DNA of 64,000 bases from Trichoplax adhaerens (lineage: Eukaryota > Animalia > Placozoa): contig NW_002060949.1 in assembly GCF_000150275.1 (NCBI RefSeq), positions 3,540,449 through 3,604,448 of the forward strand. Reading direction: 5' to 3'. Positions 20,301 through 33,220 of the stretch are shown here, in pieces (position 1 is the stretch's first letter; each line of letters opens with the position of its first letter). A program made the position numbers and the translations under genes. Under the pieces are notes generated by a model. That model searched no databases, was not told the origin of the DNA, and was given only the letters and a program-made list of their open reading frames with translations.

Positions 20301-22381
20301 CATAATTTGATTTTGATACGAAAAGTCTTTATAATTACAGTATGTATTATAATATTAAAAGTAAAAGATGAGCTGGAACGTCTATAGTACACTAGTTAGA
20401 TCATTTTCTTGTTGTATTGTCATTAACACGGTCGATAAGAATATTTTTTCTTCGTACATATACGTAAATTTCTAACGTAATTAATCTTAAAATTTACTCG
20501 TTATAGTACGCAATTGATAAAGAAGAATCGGATAAAATTGATAACGTTATACTAAGACGTCAATATCAAGCAAATGTTGGCCACCCTGAGTACATTGTTA
20601 CATATGGACAGAATGATAGCGAAAGTGGCTATATACCAAATCAGGAAGGCATCGATTCTAATCTTGTCATTCATCTAGGAGATGCTATTTATCGATATGA
20701 ACGTAATGCAAGTAAAGAAACTATGAGCCTTGGCTCTTTGTCTAACGCAAACGTAGAGGATCGACGAAGCTACGTTAGTGGACCAATGGTAGCATATTCC
20801 AATAGTAGTCTCAACTTAATAGGTTCACAAAGCCGGCCAAATGTTAAAAATAAGATTCAATCTGTAAGTAATACTAGCTTGCGTACAGCTGATAGTTTGG
20901 CTAGTTCACAATCATCCTTTTTTGGCCGATCAAATGGAGCTGTTACTGAAGCAGTAGTGGTATGCGAGTACAACGGGCTTCAGAAAAATGCGACTTCGAA
21001 TAGTATTGACAGATCTGATCAAAGGAAAGCTCAGTCAAGTGGAGAAGCAGCTACTGCAAACAAAAATAAAAGACAATCTAGTAAACTCAACAATCAACGT
21101 GAAAATATACCAAAGAACAATACTAATAATGAAGGTGTGCGTGTTATTTCTAATAAAGTGCAAAATCAAGAAAGAAATACCGCGGTAAGCGAGGTAGCGA
21201 CTTCTAATTATGCTGTATGCCATTCCAGAGGCAGTCTGAATGCATTGGGCAGCAAAGATAGCTTAGTAGACCAAGTCGAAAAACAGCGCACATCGAGCCG
21301 TGATGGTACATTAGAATTTCAAGGTGTACGGAAAGCCAATAGTAAGAGTAGCTTAGTGGATCAGTGGCGATCAGGTAATAGCAGTGAAAGCTTGCATTCC
21401 ACTAAGAGGCGTGCTAGTCGTGATAGCAATGCTAGCAACCACCTCGTCACTAGCGACGGTGTTGGTTATAATCAGGGACAAGCAATTACAAATACGCTGT
21501 CGACAAACGATCAAGCAGCTATTTATGAACCTTTAATGAGTACTCCCATAAGTGACAATAGTAACGTACCGTTGAGCGAATACCCTGATCATAATATGAA
21601 GAAATTTAGTGACTTTATAAACCAGGGAAAGTATAATACTCAACCGAGCTCAACTAACAATCCCAGTAGCTCCAATCAACCAGAAATAACTCAGCCTGTG
21701 AATGTAGTAGCTTCAACTTCAAAACCAGTCGAAAGTGTTATTAATGCTCAGCACAGAGACAAAAATGAACGACCACTTTCTGCTGACGTTGTTAACTTAA
21801 GACATGATGCAAAGCAAAAGCAAGGAAATGTTGTAATTGCACCTAGTATTGGTGTTGGCCAGCAACCCCGAGCATCCGATACTTATTCAGTGGTATCAAA
21901 TGCGAGCTTAGAGATGCCTTGGCTAGGAAACGGAGGTGGTCAACGCGACAGCATTTATTGCAATCCTGATACTGCAACATTACGTAATGCTAGAGATAGA
22001 TTTAAATTAGCCGATAGATTGTATAATGATTTGAAAAAGATGCACAAAATTGAAGAAGATGCAGTTATTGCGGTTATCAAAGAGTACAAAGATATTATCC
22101 CTGTGTTAGGCGAAAAACATCAAAATCTCCGTGGCAAGGTCTATTGTAGAATCGCAAGGGTCTACTACAACTATTTAAAGAAAGAAGAAATCGCTGGTAA
22201 ATATGCGCAGAACTCGTTGCAGTTGGCACCTGAGAATAGTCAATCTGAAGTATGGTATAAAGAAGCCCAAGATATTCTACGTAAAGTTAAGCGTAAGGAA
22301 GAATGGCAAGACAGCATTAAAAGGAACCGATTAAGTAAATTAAGCGATACCGCCGATACGAAGTATTATTATACGTCATAG
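14377..22381 (+). CDS. Uncharacterised ~760-780 aa protein: four N-terminal TM helices, long S/N-rich disordered tail, C-terminal TPR-like helical module
   Basis: Phase-0 exons are 14377-14514 (ATG|gtaagt), 18704-18772 (tag|ATC...GCG|gtaag), an optional 18899-18943, 19840-20043 (tag|GTT...ACG|gtataa) and 20507-22381. The last exon (tag|TAC) is open for 72 codons and in frame with the 552-aa ORF. Hydrophobic segments: LIQIFMYGCLICGLVTAAMTGITFW, LTLLIVLCIGSAMIILSSFLSPFII, LAFPILTIAAIITTLVF, IISVVYLVFAVIAAAL. Confidence 0.72.
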
Positions 22382-26059: not shown

Positions 26060-28783
26060 ATGGAAGGCAAATGGAATGAATCAACTCCGATGCAATCGAT
26101 TCTTTGCAAGTTTCAATCCATTAATCAACAATTTGAACGAATGAAATGCAATGACAAAACAAAAATAGACGATTATATCCTTATTGTTGATGGCTTGAAG
26201 AGTATTATCGATCTTCTAGAAAACCCTCAAGACGATCGCCAAAAGAGTAGTCTAAAAGCCCAAACTTGTAGTAGGATCGGTAGTATCTATTATCATCTAA
26301 TCCAAAATAGCGGTAAAGCCAAGATTTACTTCGATATGTGCATAGAATTGGGTGCTCAAAGTGCTTGGTTTGAAAGTTGGTACGTAGAAGCAGTGCAATT
26401 ATCCCAAAAAATTCAATCCGATGCTCAACGAAATCGATCAGATTGGCAAACATTCGAAAATAATTTACCCAAACAGACTACTTCGGGTGTAAATAGTCAC
26501 AATCAGTCGGATTGGAAAGCATTCGAGAAAGATTTACCTCGTCACGATACTGCCAGTGTAAATAGTCACAATCCAATGGATGATGGAAGCGATCAGAGTC
26601 AAACTCCAACAACGGCTGAAATTAAATTATCATCTATTATCAAGAAATTACAGGCTGCAGACAAGCAATTAGATAAATTACGAAGCAATAGCAATTACCA
26701 AACTGACCAGGTCTTGATTTTAATTGATACGTATAAGCAAATTCTACCTATAGCTATGGACGACGAAATCCATGATAGCAGTGTAATCGCTAAAACAAAC
26801 AGTAGGATTGGACTATTATTTTATCAATTCTTGAAAAAACCAGAAAAAGCCAAAGTCTATTTCACACGTTGTAAAATCGTTCATCAGGCCAACAATGATG
26901 GTAATAGCAATGAAGAGGATTGGTACCAAGAAGCCAATACTATGTTAAATTTAATTCAACAAGAAGATCATCCTAAACCTACTGAGGGTACGCAAAACCA
27001 ATCTTCTTGTAAGAGTAATCTTCATCAATCTATTCAAGGTCAACGTCCGACTAATGACAGCTCTCCATGGCGCCAACATTTTCCTGACTCGTTTGAAAAT
27101 GATAAAACTAATGGCAGCTATTCTACTTTTATGGATCATGTTAGTCATGATACTAAAACTGTTTTTACTGACGAAGATTTATTCTCATCATGTAATGGCG
27201 ACGATAGTCCAATTGAAGTAATGCTAGATTCGACCAATAAAGAATACAATTGTATAATTAAAAGTATGAATCATAACAATAATACTACTACTTTAAAATT
27301 AATTCAGACATATCAACAACTTATTCCTCGTTTCCATCCTTCACAATATCAAATTGTTGCTGAGATACAATCTAAGTTAGGAAATATTTACTACAAAATC
27401 ATTCGAAATTTAAATAAAGCGAGAGAATTTTACGTTAAATGTATTCAATTAATGGACACGCATAGTAATAAGGATGAAAATTCAGCAAGCGATTGGCTAA
27501 TTGCAGCTCGTCAGTCACTCGATCAAATCAATAAATTGAAGGCAGCTAGTGACCGTTGCAATGTAAATGCTTTTCAATATGACAATTCGATGTCAAATGA
27601 CTTTGGTCAAAGCACCAGTGGTAGTAATAATCAGTGGTCATTTAATTCTGGTTATACGATATTTGACTCTTATTGGACGCCTCAAAACGTCTTTATAGCG
27701 AAATTAAAACTTGATGTAGCAGAAGAGAAATTAAAACGTTCGCTTCATTCCAATAGCACCAATTCTGATTTACTCACACAATTGAAGAAAACCTTTCAAG
27801 AAATTATTCAAAGTGCTATCTTTAATGAAGAAAACTTAAAAGCAAGAGCATATTATAATATTGCCCTAATGCAATATCATTTAGATGTTGACAAAAATGC
27901 GGCAAGAACGGGCTTAGAAGCATGTATTAGAGAGGCGGGCAGTAGTTGTACAACTGAGCAGTGGTATCAAGATGCACACCAACTATTAAAAACAATAATA
28001 CGAGGAGATAATACTGCATCTACTTCGAGTAAGCAATCAACCACAACTGAAAGAACAGATATTGATCCTTCATCTTTTTCGTACGACAATCATATTAGAT
28101 TACAAATTGCTAAGCAAAGGTTTCATACTTCTGATCAAAAATTAAATACTCTCCAAGAAGCTAACGACAGCTGCGATCGAGATTTTGAAGCGTTAATTTT
28201 AATTGATTCATATAAAGAGATTATTTTCTTATTAAATAAAAATCATTTAGATCTAATAGCTCAAGCTAACTGTAGAATTGGGAAAATCTATTATTACATT
28301 GTCCGAAATAACGATAAAGCTATACATTACTGTCAACACTGTATTGATATGGCATCAAAGGAGTCGCGACTAGAGAGCTGGTGTAGAGCGGCATTTGATA
28401 TTATTCAGAAAATCTCAAAAGAAACGGAAGAAAATATTAATAAGCAAGAAGAAGATAATTTTGACATCAATACTGAGCTTATTCAGGAAGAAGAGAATCT
28501 ACGACAATCTTGTAACAGCATCGAGAAGCTTTTACGTTTCATTTACCAAAAGTATCCACTGCCTCAATACAGAGAGAAAAGCTATCAGTTACCGAAAGTT
28601 ATTACCATCTCTCAGGAAAAGCGATTGTTGAATAAGGCTCTAGTACATTATCATCCAGATCGCAATTCTAGGCGCGAATACGGTTTAAGATGGTATAAAC
28701 GGTGCGAAATGATAACAAGATGTATTAATGAATGTAAGAAGAAAGCTGCTATCGCTAATTGGGCTACGTTTGAGAATGTATGA
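26060..28783 (+). CDS. Intronless 907-aa protein with five TPR-like helical modules and a C-terminal J-like (HPD) domain
   Basis: A 2.7-kb uninterrupted ORF with an in-frame stop just upstream. It has five copies of a ~105-aa module (…Y-K-x-I-I…A…R-I-G-x-I-Y-Y…K-A…C-I…W-Y-x-E-A). The C-terminus is KRLLNKALVHYHPDRNSRREYGLRWYKRCEMITRCINE, with HPD at 28652-28660. Confidence 0.88.
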   Translation: MEGKWNESTPMQSILCKFQSINQQFERMKCNDKTKIDDYILIVDGLKSIIDLLENPQDDRQKSSLKAQTCSRIGSIYYHLIQNSGKAKIYFDMCIELGAQSAWFESWYVEAVQLSQKIQSDAQRNRSDWQTFENNLPKQTTSGVNSHNQSDWKAFEKDLPRHDTASVNSHNPMDDGSDQSQTPTTAEIKLSSIIKKLQAADKQLDKLRSNSNYQTDQVLILIDTYKQILPIAMDDEIHDSSVIAKTNSRIGLLFYQFLKKPEKAKVYFTRCKIVHQANNDGNSNEEDWYQEANTMLNLIQQEDHPKPTEGTQNQSSCKSNLHQSIQGQRPTNDSSPWRQHFPDSFENDKTNGSYSTFMDHVSHDTKTVFTDEDLFSSCNGDDSPIEVMLDSTNKEYNCIIKSMNHNNNTTTLKLIQTYQQLIPRFHPSQYQIVAEIQSKLGNIYYKIIRNLNKAREFYVKCIQLMDTHSNKDENSASDWLIAARQSLDQINKLKAASDRCNVNAFQYDNSMSNDFGQSTSGSNNQWSFNSGYTIFDSYWTPQNVFIAKLKLDVAEEKLKRSLHSNSTNSDLLTQLKKTFQEIIQSAIFNEENLKARAYYNIALMQYHLDVDKNAARTGLEACIREAGSSCTTEQWYQDAHQLLKTIIRGDNTASTSSKQSTTTERTDIDPSSFSYDNHIRLQIAKQRFHTSDQKLNTLQEANDSCDRDFEALILIDSYKEIIFLLNKNHLDLIAQANCRIGKIYYYIVRNNDKAIHYCQHCIDMASKESRLESWCRAAFDIIQKISKETEENINKQEEDNFDINTELIQEEENLRQSCNSIEKLLRFIYQKYPLPQYREKSYQLPKVITISQEKRLLNKALVHYHPDRNSRREYGLRWYKRCEMITRCINECKKKAAIANWATFENV

Positions 28784-30917: not shown

Positions 30918-33220
30918 ATGCCGGAAAACTCAGATAACCAGAGGAAAAAGTGGTTACGAATTAAGATAATAAGTATGGGCGATCCTCAAGTCGGTAAAGT
31001 AAGTCGAAATCGTTTCAACAGTTATAGTATCTCTTAAACTTGTATTGAAAGCGATCGTTACGAATACTATTATCGATCTGTGAGTAGAGCTATAGTGGAA
31101 TTTAATATTGAGTTGCTAAAGGTAGCTAGAAGGACATCATGCGATAACTTTAGTTAGACAGTTATATAATAATAAGAATGTAGTACTATAGAATACTGTT
31201 AAGAATCCTGTAGTATAAATTGCATAATGTAGCATTTACTGTAGGTACTAGTAGCCTCAAAGTGACGATAAGCTTACATGTTGATACTTGCTAAGTTACA
31301 ATTGGATAAGTACAGTAGCAGTATTGCATTTAACTATAACATATTCGCATTTACTTCAGTTTTCTCCAATATAGGTAGCACAATAGGTAGATTCAAATTT
31401 GAATTCATAATATAAGCTAATCATAACGCAATCAAGATCGTCACAAACACTAATCTACCTTATTTATTTTTGAGTCATATTATTTTAGCAGTCAAAGAGT
31501 CTTATTTATTTATTCATTTCTATTTCAATGCTACTCCTTTAACTAGAGCTGTATCATTAAACGATATTGTGAGAAACGTTTTGTATCGAAATACATGGCT
31601 ACTATTGGTATTGACTATGGTGTAACGAAGTAAGCTCTAGCTGGCTCTAAAACTCTCTTCTAGAATACTTATTTTAACTTTATTTTTGATTTTAATTGCT
31701 CATTCTTTCCTGCTATTGATGGATTATAAATTAGATTCCAATTTTTCTGAGTTTATATTCGTAGAATAAAGCATAGAAACTTGTAATTAAATTAATATTT
31801 TAACTGCATTAATTACAATACTGGATTGATCACATTTCTAGTTGTTGTCTATCGATAAAATGAAGTTTTTGCTCATACAGATACATATGTAATACGTACT
31901 TTGGATATAGGGTAACCATTTAAATTTTATCATATTAGTTATATTTTTTTGTAAAGAAAGAATACTTTAAATGAATATATCGCTATGGCTTTCTTTATCG
32001 TTATTAGTTTAAGATTATCAATCATTCATGCAACTGACATTTATTAGGATGAACATTAAAGATAAAAGAGTTAAAGTCAATATCTTTGATATGTCCGGTG
32101 ATCCGATTTATTATGAGGTACAGCAATACAAATTTTCTTATAACTTTCTTACTTGAGGTACAAGTGCATCGTAAATCAACTATACATGTAGCTCGAATTA
32201 ATAATCAATATAATTATACTTTCTGCAACAGATTCGTAATGAATTTTATAAAGATTCTCAAGGTGCTTTACTAGTTTATGACGTTTGTAAACAATCAAGT
32301 TTTGAATCATTAAAAAAGTGGATTGAAGAAATGAAAAAAGAGATTGATAACCCTGATAGCGTCAACAAGATGGTCATCGTTGTTTGCGGCAATAAGGTTA
32401 GTCTGGTAGTTTTCTGTAGTACCTGCAAACACGATTTGCTACCATGCTTTGTTAATGTCCTTATCTTCCATTTTTAAACTAGAACAAATTAATTATAAAT
32501 GGATTGAGTTATTACAAAGGTTGATACTTATCATTTGTATGCAATCCTATAGACTGATCTAGGTGGTAGACGTGTTATTAGTGAATCGGACGGTCGCCTT
32601 TGGGCAGATAGTTATGGCTATTATTATTTTGAAACTTCTGCCAATAATGACACCGGCATTCATGAAGCTTTTGAGGTTCATTAATACGTGTATTAAGCAA
32701 CAGTGTATTTTAAAAAATATTCTCACTTATGTGTTAATTGCTTTATATTGCGTACATAATAGACGTTAGTTCAATCTGTTGTCACTACAGTGACGACCGG
32801 TAGTAGACCTACATCTGGAAGCTCATTAAATTATTCTCGAGAACAAGCTGAGTTAGTTACAAAGATTAAAGCATCTCGAGATAATTATGAAAGACTAGGT
32901 GTCCAACCAGGGGCAAACAAGTTAGTATCTTATTATAATTAACGAAAAATTAAATTAATAGCAGAAAGTAAACGTTGAATCCGATTGTTTAATCCTGTCT
33001 TGAATTGGTAACAGAGCTATTTAGCTATAAGTTAATTAGTTAATTTCAAAACAAAGCATAGAATTTTTAAGACCATTTTAATTGCTTTAGGGACGAAATT
33101 AATAAAGCATATCGAAAGCTAGCCGTTCAGTTACATCCAGACAAGAATACAGCGCCTGGAAGCGATGAAGCATTCAAAGCGGTTGTCGGAGCAAGAGCTG
33201 CTCTTCTAGGCACACGATAA
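30918..33220 (+). CDS. DNAJC27: DnaJ homolog subfamily C member 27 (RBJ; Rab-like GTPase + J domain); 7 exons
   Basis: Exons encode [27 protein letters not shown]|[28 protein letters not shown]|...NIFDMSGD...|[11 protein letters not shown]...VCGNK|TD...FETSA... and a J domain [29 protein letters not shown]. Exons start at 30918, 31547, 32048, 32232, 32553, 32763 and 33091. None are captured correctly by the ORF track. Confidence 0.95.

Follow-up and report, generated by a model that had tools for sequence, protein, structure and literature searches.

Within the stretch of Trichoplax adhaerens DNA analysed here (64,000 nucleotides, positions 3,540,449 to 3,604,448 of contig NW_002060949.1; hereafter, the window), positions 26060–28783 hold a gene that probably encodes a cytosolic class-C J-domain co-chaperone, in which five tetratricopeptide repeat (TPR)-like domains are followed by a C-terminal J domain of the auxilin type, an assignment drawn from sequence comparison and structure prediction. 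J-domain proteins determine where Hsp70 acts, and until now J domains of the auxilin type were associated with vesicle-coat disassembly (auxilin, GAK and Swa2) and with plant chloroplast movement (JAC1). This subtype is now found in a Pfam-missed family that extends from green algae to echinoderms, of which the Trichoplax form is unusually pentavalent. The original prediction, made from the DNA letters alone, had proposed a Swa2-like layout for this locus, and such a layout was recovered: an extended auxilin/JAC1-type J domain lies at the C-terminus next to a TPR-like domain.

The gene is carried by a complete, single-exon open reading frame (ORF) on the forward (+) strand, as are all window features described below, that runs without interruption from an ATG at 26060 to a stop codon at 28781–28783 (907 codons) in DNA of ~32% G+C. 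It corresponds to the public model TRIADDRAFT_58179, an 890-aa protein with 98% identity to the 907-aa ORF product; the sole difference is a 51-nt in-frame GT..AG stretch (26988–27038) removed from the public model as a predicted intron. A collinear orthologue from a metagenome assembly (P0002, 878 aa, 50% identical) is likewise a single uninterrupted ORF on its own contig. Because of the match to TRIADDRAFT_58179 and of this orthologue, the gene is evidently real and conserved. Literature searches on the locus tag, and on Trichoplax together with auxilin, found nothing. A separate contig of 1683 bp (C593) holds a second, 100% identical copy of the 3′-end and is probably assembly redundancy.

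By profile and model comparison, the C-terminal ~105 residues are a genuine J domain, extended in the manner of auxilin and JAC1 and with its HPD loop intact (28445–28759, residues 796–900; HPD at 28652–28660, residues 865–867), a conclusion that rests on a family profile, an AlphaFold2 model, two structural searches and the conservation of the HPD motif. A profile of 41 family segments matched the J domains of JAC1 (3ag7, E 1.4e-4) and auxilin (1xi5_J, 4.8e-4; 1n4c, 1.5e-3) in alignments spanning the whole extended domain, from the N-terminal extra helix to the terminal helix, whereas canonical DnaJ proteins matched this profile around helix II and the HPD only. In the AlphaFold2 model of residues 790–907, which has a predicted local distance difference test (pLDDT) score of 91, the HPD sits between helices 61–75 and 87–116 (model numbering). 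The J fold suspected earlier from the HPD was borne out when this model was searched with Foldseek, for which the top five matches were all auxilin J domains (probability 0.91–0.99, template-modelling score by target 0.52–0.63), and in an exhaustive VIA-align search of 48,161 PDB chains, which ranked JAC1 first (Z 9.7, root-mean-square deviation (rmsd) 3.2, 102/105 residues) and auxilin second and third (1nz6, Z 9.4, rmsd 2.9; 1n4c, Z 8.6). The next match reached 6.4, and the canonical J domain of p58IPK scored Z 5.2. Across 41 aligned family members, the His and Asp of the HPD are invariant and the Pro is kept in at least 90%.

Upstream of the J domain, the five helical modules that had been described from the letters are present at the positions given for them, within the same 907-codon ORF. 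Each is ~110 aa long, their pairwise identity is 21–32%, and they share the pattern ...LIDxYKxII...AKAxxRIGxIYY...KAxxY..CI....WYxEA...L..I. Inter-module alignment and a tree support module 1 (26090–26422, residues 11–121, 61% identical to its orthologous counterpart), module 2 (26624–26971, residues 189–304), module 3 (27209–27541, residues 384–494) and module 4 (27686–28000, residues 543–647, which also gives a sub-threshold Pfam TPR_6 match), and module 5 occupies 28094–28432 (residues 679–791). Between them lie linker 1 (26423–26623, residues 122–188), linker 2 (26972–27208, residues 305–383, containing the 51-nt stretch spliced in the public model), linker 3 (27542–27685, residues 495–542) and the short linker 4 (28001–28093, residues 648–678), which is better conserved (55%). 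Against the orthologue, the modules are 48–68% and the J core 66% identical, whereas linkers 1–3 are only 16–28% identical (16% for linker 1), gap-rich and 67–81% polar; polar residues make up 67–87% across all linkers.

The nature of the modules is best seen in module 5, which was modelled together with the J domain at a pLDDT of 95.7 and whose last helix runs unbroken into the N-terminal helix of the J domain. Module 5 (model residues 1–116) superposes on compact three-TPR domains with VIA Z scores of 10–11.8 and an rmsd of about 2.2 Å (range 1.7–2.5 Å), the matches including MalT domain III, APC subunits, FKBP38, Tah1, Cns1, Sgt2, TOM70 and an idealised TPR. At the sequence level, Pfam TPR_8 and TPR_6 fall just below threshold (25.5 bits against a cut-off of 25.7 and 24.6 against 26.3, respectively; the TPR_8 match is that of module 5), and the family profile matches the TPRs of Pins/LGN at E 1e-5. 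Foldseek on the two-domain model of module 5 and the J domain gave weak TPR matches only, the whole protein found nothing useful among PDB sequences, and its Pfam search returned sub-threshold TPR matches only. The fold and this weak sequence signal together support the earlier suggestion that the modules are TPR-like. The TPRs of the histone chaperone NASP are also among the weak fold matches of the module.

Several observations weigh against this domain assignment. The module 5 Z scores of 10–12 lie in a range that helical repeats commonly reach by arrangement alone, and the Foldseek E-values to auxilin are weak (0.1–0.5). Furthermore, Pfam DnaJ (PF00226) does not match the Trichoplax protein, not even when the C-terminus is searched by itself at E 10, and the protein's J domain is therefore the divergent end of an already divergent family: 23 of the 41 family members match Pfam DnaJ (E up to 0.1, best E 3.8e-6), and five members scored singly reached 16.8–22.6 bits, under the 27.8-bit gathering cut-off. 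One could thus suppose a degenerate J domain that has lost the ability to activate Hsp70, leaving the protein as a multivalent TPR-like scaffold only; the Trichoplax protein alone fails the Pfam match, and its helix III exceeds that of the other family members by 7–8 residues. We regard this as very unlikely, given that the 50%-identical orthologue has exactly the same HPD and flanking block LLNKALVHYHPDRNS, that the J core ranks with the best conserved regions of the protein, and that the fold is confidently predicted. A complex prediction for the J domain with the nucleotide-binding domain of Trichoplax Hsc70 (residues 1–400) returned no answer (score 0.02) and is evidence neither way.

A profile search of 1.84 billion representative sequences placed the Trichoplax protein within a larger group, with 209 relatives at E ≤ 1e-3, including 27 at E ≤ 1e-10. 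Matches were confined to profile positions ~670–890, that is, to module 5, the connecting helix and the HPD domain, and nearly all of the relatives are ~445 aa long, with the matched region forming their C-termini. Those with names come from gastropods, bivalves, crinoids, a sea urchin, a nemertean, crustaceans, the ctenophore Mnemiopsis, the green algae Coccomyxa and Cymbomonas, and a marine protist transcriptome (examples are Patella LOC126810603 and Mizuhopecten LOC110449706), and no named member is from a vertebrate or standard model organism. They are annotated as 'uncharacterized' or automatically as 'J domain-containing', and a literature search found no paper on ~445-aa family members. 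The last module and the J domain thus emerge, by profile comparison, as the core that is conserved in a eukaryotic family both widespread and uncharacterised. The family's own N-terminal helical region of ~200 aa (RxxGN...SAxKN...) is without counterpart in the Trichoplax protein; within its first 100 alignment columns, the RxxGN...SAxKN stretch recalls the opening helices of TPR clamps that bind EEVD. In one crinoid member (P0015, Anneissia japonica, 603 aa), a linker-histone H1/H5 domain is present at the N-terminus (Pfam E 1.7e-27), either as a real fusion or through a merged gene model.

The Trichoplax genome contains only one detected J domain of this family, as opposed to seven copies of the module distributed over three genes. 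The sixth copy (21968–22312, identified by alignment and tree) forms the C-terminus of a neighbouring 552-aa ORF (20723–22381, +), whose product is Ser/Asn-rich, appears disordered, ends in this one module and has a 652-aa orthologue (P0031). The third gene lies ~375 kb downstream of the window on the same contig, as a 327-aa ORF that also ends in a module and has an orthologue of its own (P0057). In a maximum-likelihood tree, all 14 placozoan modules (14/14) fall on one side of a branch with support 100/98, the modules of Trichoplax and of the other species pair position by position with support 97–100, and modules 1–4 group with the J-proximal module. From this single placozoan group and its positional pairing, the module is concluded to have been amplified in the placozoan lineage before the split of the two species, with the family's N-terminal half evidently replaced by four extra copies. 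The locus had been called lineage-specific, which holds for the five-module architecture and the WxxF motifs, to all appearances placozoan-only features, but not for the module-plus-J core, which is shared from green algae to echinoderms.

We propose that the HPD loop and basic helix II would dock on ATP-bound Hsc70 and trigger hydrolysis, upon which Hsc70 would clamp the ligand of the TPR-like modules, whatever that may be. With its five modules flexibly tethered, the protein could bind multivalently and with avidity, an arrangement that would favour a lattice, oligomer or repeated client, and it may be anchored to a vesicle-coat appendage by the two conserved Trp-Phe-acidic motifs, those of linker 1 and of the C-terminus. 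Should the modules bind a coat or other lattice, the gene would represent a new Hsp70-targeting system that is simple to study; if they bind no lattice, it would still offer a clean case in which an early-branching animal amplified a domain and gained motifs.

Each of the short motifs was found at the coordinate listed for it. WQTFE (26444–26458) and WKAFE (26513–26527) lie in linker 1, FPDSF (27080–27094) in linker 2, and WATFENV (28760–28780, with WATFE starting at 28760) ends the protein as a predicted helical overhang just beyond the part of the J core covered by the structural alignments. Of 20,000 residue shuffles, 0.015% (1.5e-4) produced three WxxF[DE] motifs. This rarity overstates the case, because WQTFE and WKAFE sit in two adjacent 69-nt units (26435–26503 and 26504–26572) that are identical at 51 of 69 nt, of which the orthologue has one, reading WEMFD; by this comparison they are a single motif recently duplicated, and the independent occurrences number two, not three. 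One FxDxF is expected by chance in ~7% of shuffles. Conservation, too, is divided: the orthologue retains two WxxF[DE] positions, an island in linker 1 (NRS.W..F[ED]) and the C-terminal W[AT]TFE, but lacks both FPDSF and WKAFE. A local alignment of the linkers gave only an 8-residue W..FEN match, and the idea that linkers are remnants of lost J domains was rejected.

These motifs underlie the reading of the gene as an endocytic uncoating co-chaperone, in which the WxxF-acidic and FxDxF motifs would bind the AP-2 alpha-appendage and Hsc70, recruited by the J domain, would remove clathrin/AP-2 coats in the way known for auxilin, GAK and Swa2. In keeping with it are the C-terminal position of the auxilin-type J domain next to a TPR-like domain, the layout of Swa2 (PMC4689296), the persistence in the orthologue of a WxxF[DE] island in an otherwise 16%-identical linker and of W[AT]TFE at the very C-terminus, and the precedent of NECAP 1, which binds the AP-2 alpha-ear via a C-terminal WxxF (PMC3794858). 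Yet FPDSF is unconserved and WKAFE is a species-specific duplicate; a scan of the Trichoplax protein for listed patterns found no clathrin box, DPF/DPW or NPF, and Pfam showed no PTEN-like or UBA domain. Across 171 family members, endocytic motifs occur at background frequency only, and within folded parts. Acid-flanked Trp motifs, moreover, have other known partners, such as the delta-COP mu-homology domain (PMC7145657).

The C-terminal motif can itself be read in two ways. The last helix of the J domain ends in an aromatic-x-x-F in auxilin (AWSEFE), JAC1 (AWDHF) and the family (Y-E-x-[FL]-K), and the placozoan NWATFEN may be that structural helix-end signature displaced by 7–8 residues; the J model places WATFEN in a helix (pLDDT ~87), which would speak against a role as an appendage ligand. 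Conversely, the structural alignments to JAC1 and auxilin stop one residue short of WATFE, and the HPD and the terminal Trp are one residue further apart in one orthologue than in the other, a difference that fits a tail better than a helix packed in a fixed register. Overall, the AP-2/clathrin assignment of the original prediction is weakened by the missing clathrin box, DPF/DPW and NPF and by this resemblance to an auxilin/JAC1 helix end, and we consider endocytic uncoating an unlikely function.

The content of the genome bears on the same question. No other auxilin-type J domain was found in the assembly by a six-frame, exon-by-exon scan of limited sensitivity, which would be in keeping with an uncoating role for the present gene. 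A search for a canonical GAK/auxilin gene with the same method and limits yielded three PTEN_C2 loci; for none of them was an HPD-bearing J exon found 13–19 kb downstream, a right-strand kinase upstream or a DnaJ exon from the genome scan nearby. The AP-2 alpha gene is split into small exons in this assembly. A bolder proposal, which seems quite improbable to us, is that the ~445-aa family represents in animals and algae what Swa2 is in fungi, an ancient vesicle-coat disassembly factor combining TPRs with an auxilin-type J domain, and that it was overlooked because Pfam misses the J domain; the placozoan form would then have become pentavalent and gained WxxF-acidic motifs directed at coat appendages, and it might be the main or only auxilin-type J protein of Trichoplax.

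Alternatively, the Trp-acidic motifs might target another coat, for example through the mu-homology domain of delta-COP, so that Hsc70 would be brought to COPI or early secretory carriers. Trp motifs with acidic flanks bind this domain in tethering and (dis)assembly factors according to ELM (PMC7145657), and Swa2, the auxilin orthologue, is reportedly linked to COPI and COPII traffic (PMC4694752). Nevertheless, the motif match is generic and meets the same objections of motif conservation as the AP-2 reading, and we give a COPI role only a very slight chance. A J-domain co-chaperone carrying five TPR-like modules remains our preferred description of the gene.

Two further loci were noted. The next gene downstream in the window (~30918–33205, +) combines a Rab-like P-loop exon (30918–31037) with a canonical DnaJ exon (33089–33205, 41 bits) and looks like DNAJC27/RBJ, which would place two unrelated J-protein genes side by side. 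A 1890-bp contig (C704) encodes a protein that is Sel1-like by eye and contains LHLHPDK, followed by a protein resembling an outer-membrane beta-barrel; this contig seems bacterial, perhaps from an endosymbiont or an assembly contaminant.

Among known proteins, JAC1 (3ag7) provides the best structural and profile match of the J domain (Z 9.7, E 1.4e-4), but identity to JAC1 and plant auxilin-like proteins is 12–18% and the comparison covers the J domain only. Auxilin (DNAJC6) and GAK share the J subtype, with its extra N-terminal helix, long helix I–II loop, C-terminal position and terminal aromatic-x-x-F, at a sequence identity of only 16–23%; they differ in that Pfam and the pattern scan found no kinase, PTEN-like or C2 domain and no clathrin/AP-2 DPF/DPW-type motifs in the Trichoplax protein. 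DNAJC7 (TPR2) and DNAJC3 (p58IPK) likewise combine TPR repeats with a C-terminal J domain. Their J domains are canonical, and that of p58IPK scores Z 5.2 against the J model, compared with 9.4–9.7 for the auxilin type. NECAP 1 resembles the Trichoplax protein in having a WxxF at its extreme C-terminus, which binds the sandwich subdomain of the AP-2 alpha-ear (PMC3794858); its domains are otherwise unrelated, and the Trichoplax motif is predicted to adjoin or extend a J-domain helix.

The fungal auxilin homologue Swa2/Ucp7, compared here by architecture, has one TPR domain to the five TPR-like domains of the Trichoplax protein, and its clathrin-binding segments and UBA domain were not found in the latter by pattern scan and Pfam. 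The likeness lies in the order of parts, with a TPR domain first and the protein closing with an extended J domain of the auxilin type (PMC4689296), and the TPR-J pair of Swa2 also has a clathrin-independent role (PMC4689296). As a lead only, a language-model search (ESM-Atlas) with module 5 and the J domain returned as its nearest named cluster 'UBA domain-containing protein 7' (Swa2/Ucp7) at 0.84. On these sequence and model comparisons, the Trichoplax gene appears as a new architectural variant of the TPR-plus-J Hsc70 co-chaperone, for which Swa2 is the closest design.

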